From Salisapilia sapeloensis CBS 127946 (taxonomy: Eukaryota > Protista > Oomycota), in assembly GCA_023334545.1 (NCBI GenBank), contig JAADVB010000002.1, positions 1 through 64,000 on the forward strand: 64,000 bases of DNA, written 5' to 3'. Below the pieces are notes generated by a model that worked only from the letters and a program-made list of their open reading frames with translations, searched no databases and was not told the DNA's origin. Of the stretch, positions 2,393 to 56,039 are shown one piece after another (the stretch's first letter is position 1; each line of letters begins with the position of its first letter). Made by a program: the position numbers and the translations under genes.

Positions 2393-5300
2393 TTAATCGA
2401 GTACACCGTCGACATCGACGTCCGTGCCAGCTCGAAGTTGTTTGATAATGTTTTTCAATTTGTTCACGAGCTCACTTTCAGAGTTCTTGTTCGCATTATT
2501 CGTTATGAGCTTCACGCGAGACGCGTACGATAGTGATGTTTGTGTTTCTTCCTGTTCACGATATGAGAGGAAGCAACTACTAGTTGAGATACGATACGTA
2601 CTTGATTGTAGTCTGCTGGCGAGATGTTGACGAACATGAGCTATTATCGAGGTTACCATTCGTATCGTTCATGGAAATGGATATGCGGTGCCTACTGTCT
2701 TTGCGTTTCCACCAAGCGAGTCTTGCATGAGTTGAGTCAACTAACATCGTGCTGAGACTAAGTTATCCAAGGATATCAGATGAGTGCTTGATGTACCTTG
2801 TTGTTTCGATAAGGAATGAACTTTTCATTCGTAGAGAGTGCCGAGATGACATCGCCAAGTGCTAGTTACCATGCTTACAAGTAAAATTTTAATAGAAGTA
2901 TTCATCGAGCTTATCTTACCACTAAGACTCTTGTTGATTGCTTGTGCTTCTTTCAGTCGATCTGCAGTGGCTCCGGTCTTCCCAGCTCTTTCAGATCCGG
3001 CTAAATCGACAAGACTGAGTTTCCCGACCGTCGTTGTCTTTGTCGTCTTATTATAATTCTCAATGACGATCGAGAAGACAGAATGGCTTCGACTACTCTC
3101 AGCGTTCATTTTCGTAGCACCAACTTGTCGTTTCCGGTTTGCCTGGTCGAATAGAGTTAGTGTTTGCTCTGGACTGGTGCACTGGACACTCTTGGCGTTT
3201 TGTACGACGACCATGCCTTTTTCATTCTTCTTGATGTCCAACTTGAGCGTATCTTTTCCTGGCCCATCAAGTGCATGCACAAGGTCGATCAAAGCATCAT
3301 TGTACAGTTCCAGCATACTCGCTTGGAATTTAATGTTGTGGTTGTTCTTGTTCGCATCTGCGAGCGCAAAGAGCTGATGGATAGCTCGAGGTGTAAGTCC
3401 AGGCATGTTCTCTGTACCGGTCATGGTGAACGTCTTTCCGGAACCTGTTTGGCCGTACGCAAATATGCAAACGTTGTATCCATCGACTGCACTCTGAAGG
3501 AGGTTACTTGTATCATCAAACACTTCTTCTTGGGAGTTACTAGCTGAAAAGACTCGATCGTACGTAAATGTCTTGGGTCCTCGTGCAGTCTGCAAGTCGA
3601 GTGTATATTCATCTTTAAAAGAAACGCAAGACTGGCATCCTCGCTCTAACTCGGAGCTGCTCATCGGTCGACATCGAGCATACACTCGAATTTTTCCTTT
3701 CATATCTTCAATCATATTGTAATACTTCTTACGCAACGCTTGTTCTTCACGGTAACTTGTTTCCACTGCTGTAAATTGAGCTTTTGTGCTTGCCAGCTCC
3801 TCCGTTAGCGTTGCTACTTTAGCCGCTTCTTCGCGCAATCCTGCCATGTCCTTCTCTAACTCTACTAGTTGCATAGATTTTCCGCTCATGTTCTGTAAAT
3901 CTTGTTGACACTTTTGTAGCTCATCTTTCAGTTTTGTTGTCTCTATCTGTGCTGCCTGAAGCTGCTTGTTAAGACCATTGATCTCTCGACTGGATGTTTT
4001 CTCCATCTCATCTAAAGCTTTTCTGTGTTTCTTTTCCAACTCGCCAAGTTTCCGATCCATGACTACACTACTGACTCCACCTCCACCAGAGCTCCCTCCT
4101 GACGAAGCCTGGGTACTTGCCTTGTCCAGTGCTGCTTCGAGCTGCGTAATTTTTACCTTGTCTGCCTTTGACTTTGCTTCTAATGCTTTTAGCTTTTGTT
4201 GATACTCTTGAACAGCTTTAGATTTACCAGCGCTCGTCTCGTCCTTCTGAGCAGTTTTCTTGGGCGAGCTCGATGGCGTTTTGGCTCTCGTAGGTGAATT
4301 AGAAGGCGTCTTGGCCCTTGTAAGTGACCTTGAACCCTGAGATGGAGGTCGGTCCGGTGTCTTACTACTTTCTGATCGATATGTCTGCACCATCGCTGCG
4401 TAGTTCGCTCGAACGGTGTCAAGGTGTTTCCGTAAGACAGTGGAGCCTCGAGCCGCAGGCAATCGACTTGTTTCTGTAATTGCTGCTTGGAGAGCTTTGA
4501 TCTCTGCTGGAGCTTCAGGAGATGGACGAAGTTTCTGAAGCAGTATGACGCACTGCTTACAACACTTTGTGTACGTTTGGAAACACTTGGCCTTGTTTCC
4601 TTGATTAAAAAACTGTTTGCCTGATAAGATAGCTTCATCGATGCATCCAACAATTTGCATGGCAGCATCATGGCCTTGAGTATCGACATTTGGCATGTCT
4701 GGTGTAGATGGCTTTGGTGTCTCCGACGAGCTATCGTTAGCTATTTCGACCGTCTCCTCAACGCTCTCTTCTAGAGCTAACGTCGGCGTGATGGGCATCA
4801 TATCAGGAAGGCTTTCTTTGCTGTGAGTGTTATCAGTTAACGACAGTTGGTGAGTCGATTGCTGTACTTCCTTTAGCTGATCCTTCGTTCGCTCGATCTC
4901 AACGTCTAGCCGTGCTTTCTCTGCCCGCCGTTCATCAAGCTCTTTCGCTATCACTATCACTTGCTCTTTTAACTTATTGTAATGCGCTTCCATTGCGATT
5001 GCCTGGTCGTGTGCAAATTCTTCGCGCATGACAAAAGTTAAAGGACTAGCTTCGAATGCTTCTTTCATCCCGAGAGTGTTTAAAATCGGTTCATCAAGCT
5101 GGGACATCATTTCGTTTGACTGATTCTCTTTGAAACTTTTTGAGTCGTTCAGATCAACAGTGTTCTTAAGTTCGATCGCTTCAAAACTGTTTGGCAAGTC
5201 CACATCATTAATCGCATCGGACCTAGCCACTTTGGAAGTTATTGGCGTGTTCACATCAATTGTGTCTTTAGCCTTATTCTCTCCGGAAGTCGTAAGCACA

Positions 5301-21253: not shown

Positions 21254-22107
21254 TCTACTGGATCAAGACAATCGACTACGAGAGGCACAGTTGGTATAGC
21301 TGGTAACGCGTCGGTTGTGGAAAGGATGGATGAAATGTACCAACGAGGAAGCCGGTACAAAAAGTCACACACGCACACAAACGAGTTTCTTGTATTCGCA
21401 ACGACGATTGCTTGTCAATGATACAACGACCACAAGAACGCTGGCGTTGGTACGATAAAGTGAGTGAAGGGGGGAAGATGCGATACGACGCCTACTTGAC
21501 GTACCTTATGCGTCAACGAATACAATGCTGCAAGAGCGGAAGAAAGCACGTGCGTTTGTCTCGCCCTGGTCGCTCGCGCGCTGCTCGATTCGACGGCATA
21601 CTCGGTCAAGTACGACGCGTGAACCCAGCGTTTGTACCACTGCTGTGCCTCCTGTGGGTACGTCTCTCTTGTTCACAACGTCGGACGACCCTCTTGGTTT
21701 CTTACAACTCCCACCTGGTTGTTTCCTTTTTTCACTTCTGGTGGCTGTATAAAAAGGCTTTTTCAGTGGATGTACGGATGTATATCGTATCTATCCATTA
21801 TGCAAACTTCTATCGGCTTGTAGCTATTGGCAAGCGCTTGGAGACTGTTGATCTGTTGTCGACGGTCTCCTGATCGGAAACAGCTTTTTTTACACAAAAA
21901 ATCTTTTTGCAGATAGATTTTCAACTTAAATTTTGACGTTGAAGTTAGGTTGCAGTCTATTTAATTTAAAAGATAAAACGATCATGAAAAGATGGACGCG
22001 AAAGAACTTTCGAATGCAAAAAATTGGATTCGGAATGCCTTCGATCTTTGCATTCTTGGTGTCTCCCGAACTCATTCATCAATTTGCAAGCAACCAAGTA
22101 AACAAAC

Positions 22108-22587
22108 ATGTCTTCCTCCATCGAACAAGAGTGTGGCGAGTACAAGAACCGCGTCAAGGAATGCTACGCCGACTGGTTTGACCGACTTTGGCAAGGCTCG
22201 TGGGACAGCGCTCACTGTGAGCAGGAAGTCCACGACTACCGCTCCTGCGTCCAGAACGTCTTGTGGCGACGCAAGGAAGAAGAGAAGCGATACGGTCGTC
22301 AGCAAAAGGAAGAAGTGAAGGACACGGCCTCCAGCTACTGGGAGACGGCCAAGGAAAAGGAACAGAACTTGGCGCAAACTGCTCGACAGAAGGAAACCGA
22401 GTGGATGGACTCTGCTCGTGCTGCCAAGGACGCTGTCGTGAACACTTTTGTGAGCGGCAAGGAAGAAGCCAAGGACAAGGCGGACGAGACGCGTCGTAGT
22501 GCGAACACGACTGCCCAGCAAGCGCAAAACAAGGCTGAGGCCTACAAGGAAAAGGCTAAGAGCGAGTACCACGACCGTCGTAACTAG
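22108..22587 (+). CDS. MDM35: Mdm35/TRIAP1-like twin CX9C protein with LEA-like tail
   Basis: MSSSIEQECGEYKNRVKECYADWF...HCEQEVHDYRSCV matches Mdm35/TRIAP1 spacing; the tail is rich in A/K/E/Q/T. Confidence 0.75.
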   Translation: MSSSIEQECGEYKNRVKECYADWFDRLWQGSWDSAHCEQEVHDYRSCVQNVLWRRKEEEKRYGRQQKEEVKDTASSYWETAKEKEQNLAQTARQKETEWMDSARAAKDAVVNTFVSGKEEAKDKADETRRSANTTAQQAQNKAEAYKEKAKSEYHDRRN

Positions 22588-22672
22588 ATTGGCGTAATGA
22601 ACGAGAAATAATAAGGTATTTCAGACTCTCCGTTGAAGGATGGCATTGTATTCTCGAATGTAGGCATCAAGG

Positions 22673-24049
22673 TTACAACTTGCCAAGGATATCCTGGACT
22701 GAAGCTTCATCCGACACGACGTAGCTCTTGACCTCGGATTTCTATCACGTTATATCGATAAGAATCACATGAATAGATAGGATAGAGCATAACGTACCGA
22801 GAGAAGAGCTTCAAGCTTCTCAGCATTCAGCGACGAATCCATGGCAGTCAGCTTCTTGATAGCTTCCTCCGTCTGGACAGCTTTACCCTTGGCGGAAGCA
22901 CCCTTCTCCATGAAAATCGCCGTCTTGGGGGCATCCACCAAGTTGTTGCACGGAACGTGGACAGAGGACGCAGCGTCCGTGAGCTGCAACACGTTCTTCT
23001 TCTTGCCCTCGAGCTTCTTGCTGTCGACGACGGCACCACCGAAGAGCGAAGTGAGGCCAGCTTGGCTCCAAATGCTGCCGTTGGAAGCATACAGCGCCTT
23101 GGAGTTCACTGCTTGCGCACGTGTGGCGTCCGAGGCGTTGAAGAGCAGGACGCTCGCATCATCCTTCAAGAGGACGTCACCAGGGAGGACGACGGACTCG
23201 CTGCTTTCCTCCACGAGACGCTTCTTGGCGGCAGCCACAGCGTCTTGGACGGAGGCGAGGGAGACGTCTCCGGTGAGAACGACCTTGACAAAGAGCTCTT
23301 CGTCGTCGTTTCGGTCGAGTAAGAGCGTGGCAGACGGCTCTTGATCAGCAAACTCGCCCGTCGAAGCGACGTAGACGACAATCGGACGATCGGCATGTGG
23401 GTCCTTGGTAGGGACTTTGACCTATTTCATCCTGTTAAAGCGTCTTCTCTGTATTGTTTCCAATGTGTACGCACCAAAAAGTTCTGAGCGTACAGCGCGA
23501 CGGAGGGAGAGTCCGTGACTACACGCACGCGCGTACGATCGTCCTTAAAGGAGCCGACAGCTCCGTCCTGAGCAAAGATGTTGTCGAGGCTCGAGAGGTG
23601 GTCGACCACCTACGACTCATTTAATACTAGAGAGAGCGTGAGAATGTAGTAGAAGCATACTTGTTCGTAGAGAGGTTCGTAGGCTGTGAAAGGAACGTCG
23701 ACGTCCACTTCCTTGATGCTGACGTTTTGTCCGGCAGACTGTTTCGCGTCCTTGGCAAACTCCTCGAGTTTCGACCAACGTAGATTTTGGAAAGCATCTC
23801 CGTGTGGGGTCACATCATCCTGTGCAAGCGACCAATTGAACTCAAAGTGGAGACCTTCACGTTCCTCCGGGAAGTCCTTTACAAATGATAATAAGCTCCT
23901 ATCTCCTTTATAAATGGAATAAAAGAACATACAATAACAAAGTTGTCTGCTGCATGGGGTGTGATAGCAAATGTCCGGACGGACGATCGACGAGCTGCGG
24001 CAGTAGCAGTCGTACGCAGTGCCTTGGTCAGTCCCACTCGCATGGCCAT
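22673..24049 (-). CDS. Mitochondrially targeted PEPCK(ATP)-fold protein lacking catalytic motifs
   Basis: Five inferred exons. Presequence MAMRVGLTKALRTTATAAARRSSVRTFA; FAQDGAVGS..DRTRVRVVTDS..ALYAQNFLV and YASNGSIWSQAGLTSLFGG are colinear with PEPCK motifs. Confidence 0.65.
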
Positions 24050-39798: not shown

Positions 39799-41814
39799 CT
39801 ATTCCTTCCTTTCAGCTTGGTCTTCTAGTCGACTTTTGGCATGTGCCACTTGCTCTTTACTCATAGCATTCACAAACTTATTTGCGACCTTGGCGAGTCG
39901 GATCATGGCAGTGTACTGCGTCTGATCGACGTCATGAGACTTGCTGTCGAGGCAACAGATAGAGCCGATGGTATGTCCGTCCGGTGTCATGAGTGGGATA
40001 CCAAAGTAGAATTTGATGTTGAAACTGATCAATGCGCCCAAATTATGGAAACGCATGTCGGATTCTGGATGAGGCACGAGCAACGGCTTCGAGTCCATGA
40101 TCGTATGGGAGCAGAAAGCGTCACATCGGGGAATGGTTATCTTTTGCATGTCCGGTGAGCTCGATGCGATCGTGACTTGTTCATCTTCATCGATGATCGT
40201 TACGAAGCTTATCATACAATTGAGTTGCTGTGCCGCAATTGAACAGAGGATATCGAGTTCATAGCAGTCCATCAGTTCTTTGTAACCTCCACTCTTGACA
40301 GCCTTTGCACGTTCATCCTCTGTTTTCGGTAGTGGGAAGTCTGGGACTTTGTTCGCTGGATCATCTGCCAAAGTGATCGGATAGTCTCGTGCCTTGGCAT
40401 TCGCTAGTACACAGTTTTCCAACGGAATCGTTTTGTCCATTTGCACATTTTTCAACATCGATAGGCATTCCTCCTCTTCCTTGTCAGCGTTCAACACAAC
40501 AGGAGATACGGAGGGAGAATTCGAGTCGGCATTATCTGCCGCAATCATCTCCTTGACAACAGATATCACGGACTTTTTACGATCAGAGCTTGCGCTGGAG
40601 ATAGCATCATATAGCATGTCGGTCATGGCTTTTGCAGACGACTGACGATCCGGTCGGTCAGGTTTGATGGACACGTCGCCAATGGCATTCGGATCGACGT
40701 TTGAATATTCACATGCTTGGACACACTCGCCACATCGACGACAGACTCGACACGTTGATACACGTCCGTTTCCACTCTCAATCTGTTCTACTTGGATGCA
40801 CCCATCACAGACGTAGTAGCCACATAGGTAGCATCGAATTTTCTTTACAAGCAGCGTCAAGGGCTTCGTGCAGGCGATGCAGTGGCTATTTTTGGCTTCA
40901 AAGGCAGATCGGTTGGCTGGCACTTGATTGCCAAAGCGTCTTCGATGGACGATGTCTTGTAGCTTGCTCACGCCTTTTCCTAGACGCTGCATCCGAGCTT
41001 TAATGGCTCTAGTTGATGCGTTTCCATCCGCACTCGCGTTATCACCAGTGTAGTGGGCGTGGAAGAGGATGCGCACTTGCTTTGTGTCTGGCACCGGCTC
41101 GACGGAGTATGCTGCCGTGATATCGTGCATCTGATTGACTCTTCTCTGTGTCACTTTGCCGACCGTAAGGTCGCTTTCGTTCATAGAGCCCATGATGACG
41201 GAGAAACCATTGTCTTCGGTATGCGGTTTATAGTTTTCAAAGAAGCACCATTGCTCGTTGTGTCCAAAGGGACTTGAGCGCACGAATGTGGCTGTTTTCA
41301 CCAGCAATCGTTCGGCTCGATCTGATTCGTAGACAGAGGACTCAGCATCGGAGACAGACTTGGTGCTTGCACTGTATGCGGTTCGAACGATGGACCCATA
41401 GATAAATTGTTTCTTATAGATCCCTTTCATCGCTGCGTTATAGTCACTTTCGTATGCAGACCCGAGGATATTTTGTAGCTCGTTGGGACTGCACCGCATC
41501 TCACCAGCAGTCAGGACCTCGTACCCCGGTCCTGCGGTCGAAGCGTCAACTGCTCGAGAGAAGACGGTAAATCGCTTTCGAGTGGACATCCATTTCCAAT
41601 TACAAGCTGATAGGTTGGTCAAGTGCTGAAAGTCGATCGTTGAGGATACCTCAAGTGCTCGCGTGCGTAGTGCTTCATCGGAAAGTCGTAAGGACGAGCT
41701 GTATTTGGTCGGGGCTTCTTCCGACCATGCTGACCGACTGTCATGTCGTGAGAGGGTAGTTGTCGCCGAGCTCGGGTGGCGCGACGTGCGAGCCTTCGAT
41801 GATAAGAGCGACAT
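39799..41814 (-). CDS. Oomycete-type START-like + FYVE + GAF domain protein
   Basis: HCIACTK...RCYLCGYYVCDGC...CRVCRRC (FYVE); AFCSHTIM...HPESDMRF...KFYFGIPL..PDGHTIGSICCLD (GAF); first ATG at 41814. Confidence 0.85.
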   Translation of the reverse strand: MSLLSSKARTSRHPSSATTTLSRHDSRSAWSEEAPTKYSSSLRLSDEALRTRALEVSSTIDFQHLTNLSACNWKWMSTRKRFTVFSRAVDASTAGPGYEVLTAGEMRCSPNELQNILGSAYESDYNAAMKGIYKKQFIYGSIVRTAYSASTKSVSDAESSVYESDRAERLLVKTATFVRSSPFGHNEQWCFFENYKPHTEDNGFSVIMGSMNESDLTVGKVTQRRVNQMHDITAAYSVEPVPDTKQVRILFHAHYTGDNASADGNASTRAIKARMQRLGKGVSKLQDIVHRRRFGNQVPANRSAFEAKNSHCIACTKPLTLLVKKIRCYLCGYYVCDGCIQVEQIESGNGRVSTCRVCRRCGECVQACEYSNVDPNAIGDVSIKPDRPDRQSSAKAMTDMLYDAISSASSDRKKSVISVVKEMIAADNADSNSPSVSPVVLNADKEEEECLSMLKNVQMDKTIPLENCVLANAKARDYPITLADDPANKVPDFPLPKTEDERAKAVKSGGYKELMDCYELDILCSIAAQQLNCMISFVTIIDEDEQVTIASSSPDMQKITIPRCDAFCSHTIMDSKPLLVPHPESDMRFHNLGALISFNIKFYFGIPLMTPDGHTIGSICCLDSKSHDVDQTQYTAMIRLAKVANKFVNAMSKEQVAHAKSRLEDQAERKE

Positions 41815-43551
41815 GGAGTCTATCAACGAAATGGAAAACTGATCACAAATCGCTCGAGTTGGAAGGAGATGTCCAGTGCGACAGAAGGGCACATGCGTCA
41901 CTAATAATGTGCTTTCTTCCGATTAGTATGCAACGCCCCTATCCGCACGTGTTGACAATCGTGTCGAGTGGCTCCAGTCGATACTTTTACGCAGACTAGT
42001 GGACAGGCGTAGTCATTAGACGAACGTGAGCCTAGTCACAAATCCTCAGTAGTCATGAGGCGAGCAGTGGTACAAAGTTCAAGCCATCGTAGCTAGAAGC
42101 TGATCTATGATCAGGTTTACCGTGACTCCATAGTATTATCAGTCTCACTTCGATCTTTCGAACAATCGGTTTAAAATACGAAGACAACGACGGAGCAACG
42201 GCCCTTCCATGCCGTAGGTAGACTGTATTGCTTACTAGCTAAATTTCTTCCGTCGATGAAGAAGGGCAACAATGGTGGAAGATGAAGATTTGTTTAACAA
42301 AGAGAAGAATGCGCGCATTTTATTTGGGTGGTTGCGACCGCATGAGAGGACTGTCGGAACGCCAATCCTTCCATTTTCGTCTTTTGCATGTTGACAAGCT
42401 CACAGAAGGCACCGAACATGTACTGTCGGTAATGCTGACCTCAAGCTGGGTACCGACCTTATTCGGTATTGCTGACTTCAGAGCCTTGCGCAACCTCGAC
42501 GATTCCATGAAGACCGCGAGAGAGCAGCGTAACGAGCTTCGTTTCTACCATTACGATACCACACAGCATGAAACTAGAAAAACGTAGGCGTTGGGAAGGT
42601 CCAACCAGGCGCTGGGGCATTCTAGCGAAACATACATTCAAGTGTATCCTAGAATACAGCACCACCGGTAGCGCGGAACGTGGTGCACATTCAGCATAAA
42701 GCACGGTTGCGCTGGACTTCCACTCGAGCCATTTCATGCGAACCATCTGTAATCGTCACTACCACCCGACAATGCACCTTGATGAGCTTTTACTGCTCAT
42801 AAAGGTTGTCTTTCGTCCTTCCAGCCTGTTTCCATGTACGCTTTGCACTTCAATTCTTTTCGGACAACCCTGTATGCTGCGATTTGACTCACTTCTACTG
42901 TTCTCCCCTAAAAAATCTTGTATGTTTGTCATGGTTACCAGCAAGTATCTTTGCAAACAAACAAACAACGAAGGGCGATCATAAATAAACATTATTGCAA
43001 TAAAAAAAGCTGCCCCAATACTTTCTCATCCACCACAGGATAAGAAGCGTCAGAATATATAAAAATACTTAACAAACCATAGTGTTCTTTTCAAAGGGAT
43101 TGCTTAGGACAAAGCAAAGGACATGATGTGTTACCATTCCAAAAAGTGTTATGCATCATGTTATTCGATATACAGCAAATGCTGATAACCTTATTGTCTT
43201 ATATAGAGAATGTCTAAACGCTTTTACTCTATTCCTGGACATAAATTGCTGGCAATGGTATGCATGAGCTCTATGTTTATTCCAGAAATGGTACTTAAGA
43301 CACAGAGAGCGTTGTGCATCGTCCCTTTCAAAAGACGTGTCCAAAAGTAACTCTATTTTAGATCAAGTCAGCATTAACATACAGCATATTGAATTTGACT
43401 GGTGCATGGTGAGAGATCCAGTCATTTTGTGCGCATCATGCCAATCCTGCCAGCATATACATGTTCGCAGTTGTCGCAGCTCAATTTTTACCGCGTTAAT
43501 CACGATGAAATTGACAAAGTTTATGAGTAAATTTAATATTTGACAGTTATA

Positions 43552-44041
43552 GCCGTGTTCGCACTGAATATCGACTCAGCATACTTAAGAAGTCGCGTTT
43601 TGTGATTCTATTCATTAAATTAGAATCGGCAATTCGTATCGAACGCAGAGTTTGCCGATTCGGATTAGCTACATTGCAATCTTTCATAATATGTCAATAA
43701 AAATTTCCCGCTAAATTGCGGGTACAAAAGCGAGTGATCGTATGTCTTGTATGAAAGCATGAGGAAGAAACGATCTTCGGGACGACTTTAAGTCACGCCT
43801 GGTTCCCAATGTGTGCAAGTTTAAAAAAGCGCGCGAAACAGTCACTTCACTTGCTTAGCTCTTCGCTTTACTTGCGCTATTTAGCTCTTCATTTTTATTT
43901 CGGAACAGGCTTAGTACAGTGGCGGACGTAATAATTGAACGACATTTGCGACTTGCATTATACTATGTACCGCTGAATTGGCGAAGAGATCAATAGCAAA
44001 AGTAAATCGAATTCAACTTCAACCTGAATGACTTTCGACGA
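43552..44041. repeat. Non-coding module copy 1 (contains two inverted-repeat-bounded segments)
   Basis: Colinear with 45373-46192 (shared GCCGTGT, GATTCGGA.TAGCTA, TTGCAATCTTTCATA, AAGCGAGTG, GGAAGAAACGATCTTCGGGA, GTCACGCCTGGT, CAACTTCAACC). Confidence 0.85.
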
Positions 44042-45372
44042 GAAACCACGATACACTCGACGCTATTCCCCGACAAAGTATGACAGAAGAACGGACGACA
44101 TATGTACACGTAAATGTAAAAGTTGGCAATGATGCACGAGTAGGACGAACTGCAAAAGACTTGGGTAGTGATTTTTACTATAGTGCTTGCGTGTCTGTTT
44201 TCACCATAACAAATAATCCGCTGAACGAATGCGACCTTCGTAGAACACACTACGACATGTGTATTGCATAGTCCTACTTAGCGAGCAATATTATATTTGG
44301 AGAAGTGCAGCGTTGTCATTCAGACCTGTATTCGCGTTTTAGTAGCCATCTAGGAACTAACAATTTATATTGCGTGTCTCCGTCGTTGCTAGAGCTATGG
44401 ACTATCGATGATCTCGTCACCGTGACTGTACACGCATGGTAATCTCGGACATCAATCGAGTCTTCCAGTACCTGATGTACCTTGGACGGTCGTAGATGTA
44501 CTTGGGGACTTTCAGAGAGGATGAAATGGCATGTAAGCACTAGACCTGCATGCTAGACATTGTTGAGCATGCTATATCCCTGAATACCAAAGAAAAGAAA
44601 TTCGTTTTGCAAATGTTATGGTGGTCGACTCGAGTTACTACCTAGGGTTTTGCGCTCGAGGATGTTGTGTTGGCGGCTCGATTGCTCTGAGGCATACAAA
44701 AAGCTAGTCGTTCAAACCAACAGCGCTGACTGTAAGGAAAGTGTTGCGAATTCTGGCTCACTAGCTTTTTGTATAATCTCGAAAAGTCGTGGATCGAGCG
44801 AACACCGGAGTATGCGGACAACGAAGTAGCGATCTCGAGTCGACCACCAAAACCTTGAATTTTTCGAATTTCGAATTTCGGCATGGATAGATAGAGCGCA
44901 CTCCAAAGCGTATAATGGGATAGTCCAGAGACTCTACATGCCATTCCTTGCCTCATGAGAGCTCGCTGAAAACCCCATCCGTCTTTTCAAGTATCCCCAC
45001 TTGAAGTTTGTAGGAACACACCTCAAGCTAGAAAGCGAAAGGCCAGAGGATGGAATCTAGACACTCACGAGTGGATTGAGGAGCAAGCGAGATGGCTTCA
45101 TTTCAGTTCGGCTAAAAACTCACCACTGATGACCATCCCAGCAATGCCTTGGTCCTCGCAGATACCCGTTCTAGCTTATCATCTAGTAAGAAATCCAAGA
45201 TGATCTGGGATTCCGACTGAAGCTTGTATACGATATCGGCCTATTTTTTGATTGCTTGAACATCGTCCTGCATGTACACAACGCGCCAGTTGCGAAAGTG
45301 TCGTTCGAAAAGGTTACTGCATGTACCCCAGTGTCGACAGCATGTCTGTTCAAGAATGCATAAATAAATTAG

Positions 45373-46192
45373 GCCGTGTCTGCACGGAATCAGAGTTCAG
45401 AGAAGTTGGGGACCCATCTTTTGTAGCTCTATTAATGATAATCGAATCAGCACATTCTGCGTTCGCTGAGAAGTGCTGATTCGGACTAGCTATATGACGT
45501 TGCAATCTTTCATACCGTGCTCATATAATTTTCTCATCAAACGAGGAGTACACAAGCGAGTGGTCTCTCCTACTGATGGAAATAAGGCACCATATTCTTG
45601 GTCTAAATTGCTTCTCGTGCTCCATCCCTAGTCGAAACTGAGATTTCCATTGCCATGCTCACACCAGCATGATCTATGTGGAAGTTGCCACATATAGATG
45701 ATATTTCGGAGCGAATTAGGCCTGAATTGATATAGTCTTCAACGTCATCTACCTTTTCGTGCATTTCAATAAAGGCAATTCAAAAGACATAATACCGATC
45801 ACGGTTCGCACGTGGTTGTTCTCATGTTGCATTTTTGCCTCGCATAATTGCTGATTACCCTCTTGATGAGCACTGCCTTGCTTTTTTTTGGTCTATCTCT
45901 GTCTTAGTCTTGGATGCAAACAGGAAGAAACGATCTTCGGGAAGACTTCAGGTCACGCCTGGTGCTCAAAACGTGCAAATTTGAAAAAGCGCGTGAAAGA
46001 CTTGGTGAGCTCTACGCTTTACTTGCGCTATTGAGCTCTTCGCCATTTCATTGGGACGGATTACAGTGTGAGTCACAGGTGTCGCTCAACTATTCCGTCT
46101 AACACTGTACGATCTCTGTTCCGAAATAAAAGCGAAGGGCTCACTAACGCAAATAAATCGAAAGCAACTTCAACCCAAATGACTTTGGACGA
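45373..46192. repeat. Non-coding module copy 2 (about 330 bp extra at ~45568-45900), just upstream of aquaporin 1
   Basis: Same shared blocks as copy 1; two internal segments are reverse-complemented relative to copy 1. Confidence 0.85.
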
Positions 46193-46595
46193 TAATGCAG
46201 GGCCGGTAGGCTGGCATGGGATTAGCGTGTGCTGGGATGCACTTCAGATATCGCAAGTAACTCGAAAGCAATGCGCCTCGTTTCAAAACAGAACAAAATG
46301 CTGACAATAAAGCTCGCGCAACTTCAAGCGCGTAGCCCCAACCGATGCACAAAAAAGCAGAAACTTCAGTTTTTCGATAGCAAAAGACTGCCATATCACC
46401 TTAGTCTCGGTCAATTTAGACTCCTCGAGGATGCTTATGTGCACGGCTAGTACCCAATTCCATTGCGTCTATGAAGAATATGGCGGGTATCTATCTGGAT
46501 TGGATCGATTTTATCTCTGCACCAAGACCTTATTGAACACGAGGAGTATTCCCTTGACGTCGCAAATGCTTTTAAATCTTGTCACTTTTCCAAAA

Positions 46596-46610
46596 GCTCA
46601 CTTTGGATTT
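46596..46610 (+). promoter_or_regulatory. INR/FPR-like core promoter of aquaporin 1
   Basis: GCTCACTTTGGATTT about 60-70 nt before the ATG; resembles the oomycete GCTCATTYBNNNWTTT element and is conserved with the paralog. Confidence 0.6.
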
Positions 46611-46668
46611 AATCGCCTCGTGTCAAAGTGCATATCGCTCCTTTTGCTTCGCCCCTCGCTTTTAAAGC

Positions 46669-47547
46669 ATGTCGCTCGAATATAGGAACTCGCAAAACAA
46701 CGACAAGAACCCGACGGACTACGTCGATATGCAAGATGACCCCACCGTCTCCAATGTGAAAGAGTCTACACCCGAGCCGGATGACAAGTTTATTGTCAAA
46801 AGCGCGTACATGCGCGAGTGCATGGCCGAGTTTATCGGCACGATGATCCTCCTCCTCTTTGGTGACGGTGTCGTTGCGCAAGTGGTCCTTAGTGACTACA
46901 AGAATGGAACTTGGCTAAGCATCAATATCTGTTGGGGTCTCGGAGTTGTCTTTGGTATCCACGCTTCGGGTGGTATCTCCGGTGCCCACATCAACCCTGC
47001 TGTAACACTCACGATGGCAGTCTACCGCCGTATGCCTTGGTATAAGGTACCTGGTTACATTATCGCGCAGATGCTCGGTGGTTTTGTTGCCGCCCTCATC
47101 GTGTACGCCGTCTATTACCCGTGGATCAACCACGTTGACCCGGAAGGCAACTCTACCATGGGTGTATTCTGCACGTACCCGAACGACTTTACGCCGAACG
47201 CTAGCTGCTTCCTCAACGAAGTAGTCGGCTCGGCACTGCTCTTGGGACTCATCTTTGCGCTATGTGACGAGAAGAACAAGCCTGCAAGTAACTATTCGTT
47301 CCCAAATTCTGTGGGTCTAATCGTCGTAGCCATCGGTATGGCCTTTGGTATGGAATCTGGCTACGCCATCAACCCTGCACGTGACTTTGGTCCTCGTGTC
47401 GTTTCGGCAATTCACTATGGCTCCATCGTCTTCTCGTCGAATAACCACTATTTCTGGATTCCGATTGTGGCACCCCTGGTAGGTGGTGTAGCTGGCGCTG
47501 GGATCTATCTCATTGGCATCGAGAAGCATCACGTGAAAGCGAACTAA
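46669..47547 (+). CDS. Aquaglyceroporin (MIP family) paralog 1
   Basis: SGAHINPAVT and GYAINPARDFGPR; W/G/Y/R ar/R filter; intronless. Confidence 0.97.
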   Translation: MSLEYRNSQNNDKNPTDYVDMQDDPTVSNVKESTPEPDDKFIVKSAYMRECMAEFIGTMILLLFGDGVVAQVVLSDYKNGTWLSINICWGLGVVFGIHASGGISGAHINPAVTLTMAVYRRMPWYKVPGYIIAQMLGGFVAALIVYAVYYPWINHVDPEGNSTMGVFCTYPNDFTPNASCFLNEVVGSALLLGLIFALCDEKNKPASNYSFPNSVGLIVVAIGMAFGMESGYAINPARDFGPRVVSAIHYGSIVFSSNNHYFWIPIVAPLVGGVAGAGIYLIGIEKHHVKAN

Positions 47548-50149
47548 GCGTAATCTACAGCAAAGCACCCATTTACTTTCCGGCGCCCATTCATTAATGT
47601 AGTCTGCGCAGTTGATAAACACGCTTGCAATGTTTGCTCACTTATGTGCTGTTGTCTGTTGTCTTTTGGTGGCTGATATCGCAATACTAACAAATGTTCT
47701 CTTTGAGATGCTTTTCCGTGTCATTTGCGTTTTAGTCGTGAAGACTGTCTTTAAAAGTTGTCCAGCCTCAGATTTCGCTTTCTAGGCGCATTACTCGATT
47801 TGCTCTAAGACTGCTATATATCTAGGTATGCATCCATCTTGTCAACCTCGCATATACTGGCAAATAAAACGGTCAGCTGAAGATCTAAGCGAAAGATACC
47901 TTGCATCTGAGACTTTTATTCTGTCTATAATAAGTTACTTGGTACACGTACACAGTATCGATTACGCTGTAAGCTTGCGTTACGATTGATGGCACATGTA
48001 GAAGCTGACACTGCCTTCTACGCCAGTGCCCTACATGGTCTACCCTACCTTTGTGCGTCAGATTCAAGCACCATTTCTACGTGCCTAAAGTTTAGCTAAG
48101 GAGGTCTTAGATAGTTTCATGATCTTCATGCTGGACGCCACCGTTGCCTACGTACACTGCCTCTGCAGATTTGAATGCACGATAGAAATGAGCACGAAGG
48201 TAGAGACATGGCAGGAGACCTGCTCAAGCTGTATTGTGAGGTCTTCTCGAATACGAAGTCTACCGCTTGTGTCATGGCCATGTTCCCGATATAAGCTTTG
48301 CAAAAAAATTGCTTTATATTTATTGGAAGAGTTCCACTACAGATTACTAGACACATGCTGAATGAATGCAGAGACCTCTTTGCAATGTGCATGAATGTCG
48401 CTTGACTACAGCCACTCTTTGAACATGAACATATCGCTGTTAAAGCCAAAGTACACTTTAAACCTGGTATCAAAACAAAAGTAGCGACTCTTTTCCCAAC
48501 TGTAAGTCTGGATCTTGTGTTCTTGGTCGACATTGACTCGGGGTGTATCGTGAAGTGTTCGCTACTTGATACCGCAATTATGTATGAGAACAAGTGGAAA
48601 CTTAACGGTTTACGTATGTGCATGCTGAAATGTTTTTAGAGAGGTACATACAGTTCATCCTAACTTTTTGAAATCCTTTTACTTTCCCCGCTAAAGATAC
48701 ATGTGCGTACTAAATGGTGGGCTGTGGTAAGATGTGGCAGGATCCTAGTAACTTCAACATGGCTTCAGCACAACTTCAATGCGCCCTTACATTTCAAACG
48801 TGTCGTCCGAATCCAAGACATTTGAGTCTTTTGATGCATTGCCAAGTAATGAAAAGAAGTTAAGAATAGATAGTGAATCTTTCCAGTTGTACTTAAGAGT
48901 ACTTAGAAGATTAAAATAAATTGGACTTGTATTCCGTGGAAAGCGCATTGAAATGGAGGAACGACAGCAAGATTTGCAAAGTATATGAGTCACTTAAAGA
49001 CTGAGTTATCACATATTTCAGCTTACAAAAGGCTACATGACAAAGCTGGTGTAGGTGTGAAACGTAAACGAGAGCAGGAATATAGTTATCATAACAAGAG
49101 CGAGTAATGTCTGGAGTAGATTACCGGTAATGCAGACCTACTAATCGACTAATTTCAGGTACCGATGACATTAACTTCCGCTGAGCATATGCAGCGTAAG
49201 GCTCTGCATATGTATAGCGTGAGCACAACGAGAGATCCTGAGCATCAAGAAAGAAAGAGTAAATTGTATCGGCGCAATAGCTATATTTGATAGCACGTGC
49301 CATATCGGTATTTGGAATGAGCAACAAATGCTTGTGCTGTTCAGATAAATACTGGCATGTTAAACCGTTTCTAGTCTCGAGTCATTTTTTGGCTATTGGC
49401 ATTCACTTTCGTATTGATCTAGGTAATGATACTATGAAATAGACTGAGCTATCATACGCAAAAAGAGTCTCGAGTCTAGTCCAGAAACGTAGGTGTCTTG
49501 CTCCTTCATAATAACCACCTTAATTTGATCGCTAAGATGTGAAATTCGTCCACCTCGAAAACACGCATTAAACCAGATATAAATACTGCTCCGTGCTCGC
49601 TTAGTCATTCTCTCACCATGACTGTGGACGGACTATACAAGAGCCAAGTACTCAAATTTACCAATTAGTAAAATAATCTGATAATGCCGTTACTTTCGTT
49701 ATCAGGCCTGGGAGGAGTGTGGGACTTGCTCTTATTACCTCGAAAGTTATAAAGACGCTTGCAGTTGAATAACGAGAGGATCTGGAATTATTGACATCGT
49801 TTAAATTTGCTTGTCTATCATCTACAATCGTCATCTTTGGCAGCTTGAACCCCAATTTTCTGCAGTTGATTAAAGCCATCGACTCAGGTGCTTTCACAGC
49901 AGATACAAAAAAGGATTGGCATCGAGTCATCATGACTCTCCGGATGTTTAACTATGCTGTACGTTTTTTTGCCCGAGGTACGTTACCATATCTAACGCAA
50001 AGCAGCCCAGAAGGAGATGTATAAAGCACTTCAGCAGTGTATTCCTCCGTATCGTCTCCACTTGAAGGAATGGTTTTGCGTCTCCGTACTATTTCTAAAT
50101 TGATAAGCTAGTACTGTTTTTTTTAAATTATGCCGACGCAGTGGACGGC

Positions 50150-52938: not shown

Positions 52939-54398
52939 AGCTTGGTGCTATTTAGATGACAAAGCTTTGCATCTTTTGTTTTGTCATAAGCTTTCTATTT
53001 CAAGTAGCAAAATGGTATCTGAAGTTTCTGCATGGTTTCTGAATCTCACCAGTCTTTCTTGGATGACATGACGTTATTGATCGGCATACATGGCTGTTCA
53101 TAAGAACACTTATTGTCGATTGTTAGCAGTCACTTGGAGCTACTTCGATGATAACTTCGGTCTTTCAAGCTCTTTTCATATATCTTGATTTAAACGAGTC
53201 CCAAGCTACGCTCACGCTACATTTATCACGAGGCTATTCGATTTCGAGATGCGTACCAAGCGAAAGGTGCTTCAAGAATCGCAGTACCTTTTCCAACACA
53301 GCAGTCATCACTACAGGACGACGAGGATTGAGAGAGAGCGAAGGGTACGTAATTCGAAATGATGCACATCTGAAGCGAGAAGCTGACGAATTGACTGATA
53401 TCATTGTATCGCAGGAGCGCATGCGCAAAAGGACAATAGACAGCCACGAATATATCGTTGCGTGGACACTGCGACTTGGTCATGCACCAGTATGAAAGCA
53501 TGCAGACGAGACGACGCAACTGTATTATAAAGTAGAAACGTTACACGCACGGCAGCAAGGATACACTTTTCCCTCGTACGACGCATCTTCGTTTAACGAT
53601 TTAAAACGTTCTTTGATTTTGCACGTGAAGTTAACATGGCTCTAGAAGATTTGAAAGAGCTTGGCAGCTCTGCACGACGATGTCAGTGACAGCACATCTG
53701 GAGTCGTTCCCACAGCCCGCTCTAGATGCTCAACTAGTCAGGGGAGTGGAAGATTGACGACCTACCATTCAAAGAGGGTGCTCGACCAGAAGTCTGTTCA
53801 CGATGGCTATCAAGTCGACCGATATGCGAATGTGTATCCGCGATGGTCTTGTTTTTGGCGCCGAAGCAATGTCGTTGATGCTCTATCGAAGGAATAAGAG
53901 GGAATAGGGCCGTATCCATAAACGATCTGTGTCTAACGGATCTGCCTCCAGTCTTATCGTCATCTCCTTCAGACAAAGCACACCTGTGGAATCGCAAATG
54001 CACGTCTAGCCGGACGTCATGTAAAAGGGATTTATCGCAGGAAGTGTCAATCGAGCACTGACTGCGACTTGCTTACGCAACGAAATGCTTGGACTGGACT
54101 GGGCCAACTGCTTGAAGCTGCGTCAGGTTCAAGGATGTAACCCCAAACGGCGCGCATAGGTCGGACGCTTCAGTCTTCCAGCTGAAGTTTGCGGATCGAT
54201 TGACTGACGCTTGGCTGGTCTCCATCGACTTAGCGTCCTCCGAATGTGGATAAATCTCTATTTCGTCTCGTCTATCACGACGTGGTTGACTAATCACCTG
54301 GTTTGAACCTCTTTCACCGAGGTCCGAAGACCTTCTTCAACGCGCCTCGGATTCTCATCACATCGTAAGAATTTTTAAATCCTGCCGGTTCTGTGGCA

Positions 54399-54413
54399 GC
54401 TCATTTCGGATTT
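54399..54413 (+). promoter_or_regulatory. INR/FPR-like core promoter of aquaporin 2
   Basis: GCTCATTTCGGATTT about 60-75 nt upstream of the ATG; preceded by TTTAAATC as in paralog 1. Confidence 0.65.
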
Positions 54414-54474
54414 ATTCGTCTCGAGCACAAGTTCACATCACTCTCTTATTCGTGTAAAACCTCGCCGATACAAC

Positions 54475-55350
54475 ATGTCGCTCGAATACAGGAACTCGCA
54501 AAACCACGACAAGAACACGACGGACTACATCGACATGCCGGATGATGCCGACGCACCGGTGGTCAAGGACTCAACCAACAATGACGAACGATTCATGGTC
54601 AAGAGCGCATATTTGCGTGAATGTATGGCCGAGGTGCTCGGCACGATGGTCCTCATCCTTTTTGGTGATGGTGTCGTCGCGCAAGTCGTGCTCAGTGGTA
54701 ACTCGAACGGAAGCTACTTGAGCATCAATCTGTGCTGGGGTCTCGGTGTCGTCTTCGGTATTCACGCCTCAGGTGGTATCTCTGGTGCTCACATTAATCC
54801 TGCTGTCACGATCACGAACGCTGTCTATGGTCGTATGCCATGGTACAAGGTACCTGGCTACATTCTCGCACAATTGATTGGTGCGTTCCTGGGTGGTCTT
54901 ATCGTCCTTGCTGTCTACCACCCATGGATCAACCATGTGGACCCGAACGGCACGGAAACGTTAGGCATCTTCTGCACGTACCCGAACGACTTTACGCCGA
55001 ACGCTAGCTGCTTCCTTAACGAAGTTGTCGGCTCGGCACTGCTCTTGGGACTCATCTTTGCGCTATGTGACGAGAAGAACAAGCCTGCCAGCGTTTACTC
55101 GTTCCCGAACGCCGTCGGTCTTCTCGTCGTGGCCATCGGTATGGCCTTTGGTATGGAATCTGGCTACGCCATCAACCCTGCACGTGATCTTGGTCCTCGC
55201 CTCGCTTCGGGCATCCACTATGGCTCCGTCGTCTTCTCGTCGAACAACTACTACTTCTGGATTCCGCTCGTAGCGCCCGTGATCGGTGGTATTCTTGGCG
55301 CTGGAATCTATCTTCTGACGATCGAGAAGCATCACGTGAAGGCGAAGTAA
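54475..55350 (+). CDS. Aquaglyceroporin (MIP family) paralog 2
   Basis: SGAHINPAVT and GYAINPARDLGPR; highly similar to 46669-47547. Confidence 0.97.
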   Translation: MSLEYRNSQNHDKNTTDYIDMPDDADAPVVKDSTNNDERFMVKSAYLRECMAEVLGTMVLILFGDGVVAQVVLSGNSNGSYLSINLCWGLGVVFGIHASGGISGAHINPAVTITNAVYGRMPWYKVPGYILAQLIGAFLGGLIVLAVYHPWINHVDPNGTETLGIFCTYPNDFTPNASCFLNEVVGSALLLGLIFALCDEKNKPASVYSFPNAVGLLVVAIGMAFGMESGYAINPARDLGPRLASGIHYGSVVFSSNNYYFWIPLVAPVIGGILGAGIYLLTIEKHHVKAK

Positions 55351-56039
55351 GGATGGTTTAGAGCAAAGCATCCATTTACTTTCTAGCACTCTTTTCATTG
55401 GTATAGTGTGGAAGTCGTCGTGAACATGATTGCAATGTTTGTCCGTAGCTTGTGTATCGTTGTTGGTTGTCTCTATGTGTGTATACGAGCTCATTTAACG
55501 GATATCGTTGATTGACATGGTGAAGGTGCATCTGTCGCTTTTGATGTGCATGAATTGCTATGAATGGAGCTCCTCGGACTGTCTGCCGTTAGCGCTTGCT
55601 GATACGTATGACGCTGGATGTAGGTAAACGACATAAGTTCCAGATAAAGTACAAGCATATTTACTTGGCAGATGCACAGTACGAACTATTTTCCAACTGC
55701 TAGACACGCACGAGTTTGCGACTGGATCCGTGTCATATCGACCTCCAATACGACAACATTGGAAATGGTAGGTTAGAATACAAGTAAAGAAACTTTCGTG
55801 CAATAAATTTATTCATATAACAAGTCCATCTATACATCCATACACCATTAATGGAGCTCTACACTTGCAGGAGTAGTGAGGCTTCTTCCAGCTTACTCTA
55901 CCTTCTCCATCCCATTCCATTTCATCCTGATGCCTTTTAACCGTTCGTCCAATCATCAGTCTATATTTCCTTATACCATCCAATCAAATTCCATAGAAAT
56001 GATATGAAATCGCTGGACACTTTTAAAAGCCGATAAGCC

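Follow-up and report, generated by a model that had tools for sequence, protein, structure and literature searches.

A 92-nt segment bracketed by 26-nt inverted repeats was found in opposite orientations at two places in the window (the whole stretch of 64,000 nt of DNA that was analysed), which raises the question of whether it is a DNA switch or the trace of a past inversion. An earlier note on this DNA had proposed either a single micro-inversion event brought about by the inverted repeats or a switch resembling phase variation. The genes of the window encode a kinesin, a CLC channel, WDR3, pyruvate kinase, a FYVE-GAF protein, and two MIP-family aquaglyceroporins. The data for the stretch came from the organism's sequencing runs, one of DNA (X1) and four of RNA, all as Logan contigs; X1 was possibly the sample behind the window's own assembly. 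The two segments lay in two copies of one module, whose parts and neighbouring transcription units were as follows.

43598-44044: module copy 1, composed of small hairpin, spacer, A segment, left arm, core, right arm, and B segment
43623-43661: small hairpin of copy 1, with a perfect 10-bp stem and a 19-nt loop (DNA fold -11.9 kcal/mol, z -3.6)
43744-43864: A segment of copy 1, which belongs to the dispersed family and has raised depth and 86-90% identity to 45922-46041 in ungapped blocks
43865-43890, plus strand: left arm L1, matching L2 at 25/26 and reverse-complemented R1 at 21/26
43891-43982, plus strand: core 1, in the orientation that appears common in the family, matching core 2 at 66/92 in reverse complement
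43983-44008, minus strand: right arm R1, matching reverse-complemented L2 at 22/26 and R2 at 19/26
44009-44044: B segment of copy 1 (family part), 32/38 to copy 2 over 44007-44044
45029-46012, minus strand: spliced non-coding transcript, starting just outside L2, with an intron at 45737-45795
45419-46195: module copy 2, with its parts ordered as in copy 1, about 340 additional nt at 45566-45906, and the core inverted
45444-45482: small hairpin of copy 2, with the loop inverted and two compensatory stem changes (fold -14.2 kcal/mol, z -4.5)
45907-46015, minus strand: A segment of copy 2, also the first ~100 nt of the minus-strand spliced non-coding RNA
46016-46041, plus strand: left arm L2, the most abundant family part (depth 22000-23000 at 46010-46031), where contigs break
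46042-46133, minus strand: core 2, opposite in orientation to copy 1 and apparently to most other members, 66/92 as the reverse complement
46134-46159, minus strand: right arm R2, more diverged than the other three arms
46160-46195: B segment of copy 2, over which depth falls from 286 through 83 to the single-copy value of 44.5
46669-47547, plus strand: aquaglyceroporin gene 1 (Pfam MIP, E 8e-53), with upstream RNA to ~46406

No third copy of the module was found in the window by blastn (word size 7, E <=10) or by an arm search allowing up to 3 mismatches. The aquaporin gene duplication started only at 46524, and upstream of the second aquaporin there was no copy that could serve as an outgroup. 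In a protein atlas, the aquaporin matched an aquaglyceroporin-like protein, and a look-up by its exact protein sequence gave no entry.

Opposite orientation of the cores

The left arms of the two copies were alike at 25 of 26 positions and the right arms at 19 of 26. Each left arm matched the reverse complement of its own right arm at 21 of 26 positions (binomial chance ~2e-8), and the spacer between the arms was exactly 92 nt in both copies. Core 1 (43891-43982) was aligned without gaps to core 2 (46042-46133) in reverse complement with 66 matches in 92, whereas only 31 matches were obtained when the cores were compared directly. Shuffled cores (n = 10,000) gave a mean of 23.4 matches, with a standard deviation of 4.2 and a maximum of 40. 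A palindromic core would be a trivial cause of a reverse-complement match and was rejected, with the two cores matching their own reverse complements at 28/92 and 38/92. Because the cores agreed far better as reverse complements than directly and are not palindromes, the 92-nt flip between the two copies is genuine. The arm coordinates, the spacer length, and the core count given in the earlier note were reproduced on recomputation.

The inverted repeat extended to 43862-44009 and 46015-46162 in a repeat search (148 nt, 76%). Outside the core the two copies were collinear, as had also been claimed. Positions 43744-44044 were matched with 45907-46195 by blastn (70% with gaps), a second collinear match joined 43598-43739 with 45419-45565 (68%), and in ungapped blocks the flanks were 86-90% identical in the direct sense. 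A core that matches only as the reverse complement between collinear flanks, a feature of micro-inversions flanked by inverted repeats, was thus found here. The one-off micro-inversion proposed earlier fits all the evidence.

When all pairs of breakpoints were scanned, the best model ran from direct to inverted and back to direct with 157 of 196 matches, compared with 118 for an all-direct model. The left breakpoint was placed at 43887-43893, which is the inner edge of the left arm. The right breakpoint had its best fit at 44002-44006, in the outer part of the right arm, and lay within 43993-44013 when two fewer matches were allowed. Since R2 has diverged most among the four arms, matching every other arm at 19-21 of 26 positions, the right breakpoint can be placed anywhere within the right arm. 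The crossover had been located at the inner edges of both arms; this position was retained on the left, and on the right the best fit lay farther out in the arm.

The flipped cores were 28% diverged (72% identical). The core (66/92) was more diverged than the flanks (136/157, 87%; Fisher p = 0.007). Such faster divergence of the core is not predicted by a simple in-place flip of a neutral duplicate.

A dispersed repeat family

The baseline word depth of X1 was 42-45, with long contigs that showed 0 differences. Depth was far above this baseline over both elements and over 44524-45054. To the 311 nt of 45900-46210, 238 contigs of X1 were mapped at an identity of at least 85%. The summed depth rose from ~500 to ~16000 along the A segment, peaked at 22000-23000 in the left arm, dropped to ~450 in the middle of the core with a minimum at 46076-46097, and reached 2400-3800 over the core end and right arm. 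It decayed across the B segment and regained the single-copy value of 44.5 at 46197. These summed depths, up to ~23000 against 44.5, are not equal to copy number. The many contigs and the contig breaks inside the arms indicate a multi-copy family of ~285 nt. The arms, the core, about 100 nt of the left 'flank', and about 35 nt of the right 'flank' belong to this high-copy dispersed family, in which the arms were best conserved and the core centre least. The high-copy repeat nature of arms, core, and 'flanks' was not visible to the earlier reading.

The repeat unit of ~285 nt was non-coding, with only chance open frames of up to 65 aa. A homology search found no homologue of one such frame across the A segment, arm, and core (43755-43928). 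Terminal inverted repeats, formed by the arms of 26-30 nt (21/26), were present in both copies. No direct repeat of at least 5 nt was detected within 12 nt of the module borders as a target-site duplication, the borders of the family being uncertain. Neither Rfam (E up to 1) nor a tRNA scan gave a match, and these blank scans ruled out a known RNA or a tRNA-derived SINE. Judged from these sequence features, the repeat resembles a MITE or foldback element and is a candidate member of that class. It is likewise short, non-coding, and high-copy, and its inverted-repeat arms are its most conserved part. Unlike these non-autonomous elements, it showed no target-site duplication, its copies were asymmetric, with A on one side and B on the other, and it was without a known autonomous partner or transposase.

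Another high-copy foldback was located between the two copies, at 44612-44856, and the interval that holds it fits a repeat island. A reading of copies 1 and 2 as the terminal repeats of an LTR, TRIM, or LARD element was rejected: there was no duplication around 43598-46196, the repeats were ~70% identical with a 340-nt indel, and the interior was built of other repeats.

Arrangement of other family members

The orientation of the core in other members was read from X1 contigs. In four contigs, the reverse complement of B preceded the arm and was followed by the core in the plus orientation of copy 2; a 313-nt contig covering 46030-46143 is an example. R2 was followed by the reverse complement of A in seven contigs, and in one contig A was joined to the 3' part of the core in the orientation of copy 1. 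Read on the other strand, these contigs give the order A-arm-core-arm-B and therefore the arrangement of copy 1. Genomic contigs from outside the two copies carried the arm with the core start, and the core end with the arm and B, in the orientation of core 1, and 10 contigs from outside copy 1 had the reverse complement of B before the arm. At positions 46051, 46061, and 46069, the core of copy 2 differed from the family majority and copy 1 had the majority base. From the arrangement of the other members, as read in flagged contigs, and from these majority bases, the inverted, derived form is probably that of copy 2; a member with the arrangement of copy 2 would align without a flag.

Transcription around copy 2

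RNA contigs covered 45029-46012 with 0 differences in runs X2, X3, and X4 and ended at 46006-46012. A contig of X4 skipped 59 nt, 45737-45795, which are bounded by CT..AC on the plus strand and thus by GT..AG on the minus strand. This skip and the contig ends point to a minus-strand RNA that is spliced and has its start a few bases outside L2; it contained no open reading frame longer than 57 aa. On the other side, aquaporin RNA contigs covered 46406-47196 and began near 46406. No RNA depth was found over 46076-46293, and the silent stretches 43108-43284 and 46117-46293 indicate that the RNA runs were not contaminated with DNA at the assembly level. The 5' ends of the RNAs, at ~46010 on the minus strand and at ~46406 on the plus strand, were located outside the arms. 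The flipped core lies in a divergent promoter region, outside both transcripts. Copy 2 ended 510 nt before the aquaglyceroporin ATG at 46669, in agreement with the ~500 bp estimated earlier.

At copy 1, weak RNA was found over 43349-43823. The minus-strand A segment was transcribed at both copies, whichever orientation the core had, and RNA contigs from other loci also ended inside the A segment. Two core-promoter motifs of oomycetes, INR (YCAYTYY) and FPR (MWTTTNC), have been described (PMC3599244); by eye, neither of them fitted well at the minus-strand start near 46010.

Orientation at each locus

Each locus was covered by a contig of X1 at a depth of ~45. The contig over 43861-44070 had the orientation of copy 1, and the contig over 46031-47196, which reached 1 kb into the unique aquaporin side, had the orientation of copy 2; both showed 0 differences. 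Joints between opposite strands at 43890/43982 or 46041/46133 were not listed among the X1 contigs, which drop rare variants. Per locus, the contigs of this one DNA run showed the reference orientation only, a view in which low-frequency flips are invisible. Other opposite-strand joints occurred at single-copy depth and fit separate members with shortened cores. The orientation thus appears to be fixed at each locus, and the contigs leave room for rare flipping. A Pfam scan of the 20 largest open reading frames of the 64-kb window found neither a recombinase nor a transposase, which bears out the statement that no recombinase is visible in the window.

A second inversion in a small hairpin

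A second, smaller inversion in the same module, which had escaped the earlier reading, was found in the loop of the small hairpin. The 19-nt loops of copies 1 and 2 matched at 2 of 19 positions directly and at 15 of 19 as reverse complements, and none of 20000 shuffles reached 15. The stems were perfect over 10 bp in both copies and differed by two compensatory changes. A loop inversion accompanied by compensatory changes is the strongest signature of template switching according to Mönttinen and Löytynoja (PMC8794818). That the 19-nt loop was inverted in the same module as the 92-nt core indicates that the module is prone to hairpin-driven inversion.

Origin of the inverted core

On balance, the locus is best explained by an old, fixed inversion mediated by inverted repeats within a hairpin-prone repeat of the MITE or foldback kind, and not by a programmed switch; we hold this reading to be probable, though by no means secured. 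The two loci would be old, diverged copies of one non-coding module, which contains a member of the high-copy dispersed family with arms resembling terminal inverted repeats. A single inversion of the 92-nt spacer would have occurred in the lineage leading to copy 2 and would then have become fixed. Its likely cause would be an inverted-repeat-mediated event, for instance template switching during replication or a related form of break repair, and the 19-nt loop of the second hairpin may have undergone the same kind of event. Template switching is the mechanism that we infer. With cores 72% identical and arms matching at 21 of 26 positions, the inversion appears to be old. A spacer of 92 nt is large for template switching and counts against this explanation.

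The inverted core of copy 2 might instead have been acquired from elsewhere, either by ectopic gene conversion of core 2, and perhaps of R2, from an oppositely oriented member, for which the arms would provide homology at either end, or by descent of the two copies from different subfamilies with source elements that already had their cores in opposite orientations. An abundant family supplies donors in both genomic orientations, and the lower identity of the core than of the flanks (72% against 87%, p = 0.007), the strong divergence of R2, and the inclusion of the right arm in the best-fitting tract are in line with such an origin. The arm-core-arm contig of another member was also about 85% like copy 2, compared with the 72% of core 1. 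However, the core centre was the least conserved part throughout the family (46076-46097), so that fast divergence needs no conversion. Outside the high-copy part, the two copies had further features in common: the segment 43598-43739 / 45419-45565 with the small hairpin, an arm that was partly duplicated in tandem, and, at 45940 and 45968, states that go against the family majority. Low-copy sequence and private states common to both copies favour a local duplication, and no member arranged like copy 2 was identified elsewhere, where such members align without a flag. Conversion or subfamily descent is accordingly regarded as unlikely, while still deserving consideration. A spacer that changes orientation repeatedly as a frequent mutation, by hairpin template switching and with no dedicated enzyme, would make orientation polymorphic among strains or cells. 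It would accommodate the two independent spacer inversions within one 450-nt module and the members with rearranged or shortened cores (joints 46018/46077, 46047/46083, and 46050/46104), and spacer inversions in yeast are reversible and recurrent (PMC8604942). This seems improbable to us, however, because the contigs gave one orientation per locus at full single-copy depth, the cores were 28% diverged, and the arms were imperfect, whereas recent template switching tends to perfect them (PMC8755829).

A programmed, recombinase-driven switch controlling either the aquaglyceroporin gene or the non-coding RNA divergent from it was suggested by inverted repeats that bracket a segment found in both orientations, and by the position of this segment between transcription units with 5' ends at ~46010 (minus) and ~46406 (plus). 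The arms, however, matched at only 21 of 26 positions, differed between the loci, and were derived from a very-high-copy family, unlike those of a dedicated switch. The two orientations occurred at two different loci with 28% divergence and not at one, with one orientation per locus in contigs of single-copy depth. The RNA started outside the arms, the A segment was transcribed at both copies, and the 20 largest open reading frames of the window included no recombinase or transposase. The switch considered in the earlier note was therefore left without support and is judged highly improbable. As for an assembly artefact, in which the repeat was collapsed or flipped by the assembler, the arms are indeed high-copy and short-read contigs break in them, yet in independent k-mer contigs both cores reappeared without a difference. 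The contig of copy 2 (46031-47196) reached 1 kb into unique sequence, copy 1 was spanned by its own contig (43861-44070), and 28% divergence implies two distinct loci and not one sequence placed twice. An artefact is hardly credible.

Comparison with known inversions

Spacer inversions of the type favoured here, an old event mediated by inverted repeats, have been reported in several systems. In the template-switch mutations (PMC5453318, PMC8604942, PMC8794818), a segment between repeats is likewise replaced by its reverse complement with the flanks remaining collinear. In yeast, both homogenisation of the arms and inversion of the spacer between inverted repeats were described, including reversals (PMC8604942). 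The published spacers are short, 2-5 nt in yeast genes (PMC8604942) and ~4 nt in RNA loops (PMC8794818). Unlike these cases, the present spacer is 92 nt, and the large element has imperfect arms. Between human and chimpanzee, nuclear micro-inversions with inverted repeats on either side were found at sizes of 17-33 nt, and break-induced replication was proposed for them as an alternative mechanism (PMC8755829). The present case is likewise nuclear, eukaryotic, and flanked by inverted repeats, with the left breakpoint at the inner arm edge. The human-chimpanzee inversions, however, were 17-33 nt between orthologues and usually exact (PMC8755829), whereas here 92 nt were inverted between old paralogues with 28% divergence.

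The bacterial systems Hin/Gin, fimS, shufflons, and the Bacteroides invertons share with this locus the inverted repeats around a segment of a promoter region and the occurrence of both orientations. Unlike in the bacterial invertons, the orientations were found here at different, diverged loci, the repeats were imperfect, and the window held no recombinase among its largest open reading frames. Unlike in bacterial invertible promoters, the RNA start lay outside the segment, and the host is a eukaryote. The event class is already known in eukaryotes, and the 92-nt spacer is unusually long for it.

Implications

The locus provides a clear and unusually long example of spacer inversion within a repeat family of a compact oomycete-like genome, accompanied by a textbook-like inversion of a loop with compensatory changes in its stem, and a natural case for how long a spacer can be flipped by repeat-mediated events. 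It also calls for caution, in that paralogous repeat copies with opposite internal orientation can mimic a DNA switch. The observation would be important only if both orientations occurred at one locus; as read here, it is minor. A further reading, which we consider very doubtful, is that the module is mobile and carries a transcription start, with the spacers of its hairpins flipping recurrently by template switching. If this were true, it would constitute an enzyme-free mutational flip-flop in a eukaryote, and orientation would be polymorphic across genomic copies and strains, affecting divergent transcription near genes such as that of the aquaglyceroporin. For the organism, the locus reveals a repeat family that provides transcript starts close to genes.

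Small hairpin and left arm of the module

Both copies of the module, a diverged non-coding repeat, contained a small hairpin with perfect 10-bp stems (43623–43661 in copy 1 and 45444–45482 in copy 2). The stems of the two copies were distinguished by two compensatory changes, and the 19-nt loop was inverted between them, matching at 15 of 19 positions as the reverse complement and at only 2 of 19 in direct alignment. The signature of this hairpin is template-switch-like. An opposite-strand joint, 43662 / 45351, was present in assembled contigs of the organism's one DNA run and of all three RNA runs. Position 43662 of this joint was the end of the small hairpin, the depth was near single-copy, and the short side was just 23–34 nt. 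The joint may represent another genomic copy of the hairpin-adjacent sequence, rather than a rearrangement at the module locus.

Ahead of the left arm of the inverted repeat lay a partial tandem duplicate of that arm (43855–43902 and 46006–46041). The 10-nt motif TTAGCTCTTC occurred twice at a spacing of 26 nt, and a third, degenerate copy was located at the start of the core. The arms look like arrays of ~26-nt subrepeats. Foldback elements have arms composed of subrepeats, and the arms of the dispersed repeat appear alike in this respect.

Neighbouring repeat and transcripts

Other features in the window were as follows.
39799–41901, minus strand, FYVE-GAF ORF
44612–44856 (wider 44524–45054), separate foldback element, inverted repeats nested (one of 23 nt, 91%; one of 15 nt, perfect)
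45029–46012, minus strand, spliced non-coding RNA with a 59-nt GT..AG intron at 45737–45795

The separate foldback element gave a DNA fold of −48 kcal/mol (z −4.5). Across its wider region the DNA word depth was 400–1760 versus 42, and the depth was also high in RNA runs; the element is therefore another high-copy repeat, which is expressed. ORF 44642–44956 in this region had no match in a Pfam search at 1e-5.

The aquaglyceroporin paralogues (46524–47636 and 54327–55441) shared 77% identity across 1.1 kb, and the similarity included 145 nt 5′ of the ATG. A contig over 47167–47384, found in both the DNA run and RNA, carried 16 differences with very high RNA depth, and its source was probably a paralogue with higher expression.

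Upstream of the FYVE-GAF ORF, high-depth RNA contigs at 42400–43044 extended for over 1.1 kb; this points to upstream exons that are not annotated or to a long 5′ UTR. The non-coding RNA, which showed an alternative skip of 74 nt in another RNA run, started within the A segment, the ~100-nt part of the dispersed repeat family outside the left arm. The A segment also held the ends of RNA contigs from other loci, and the repeat family may therefore be a source of leaders or transcription starts in the vicinity of genes.
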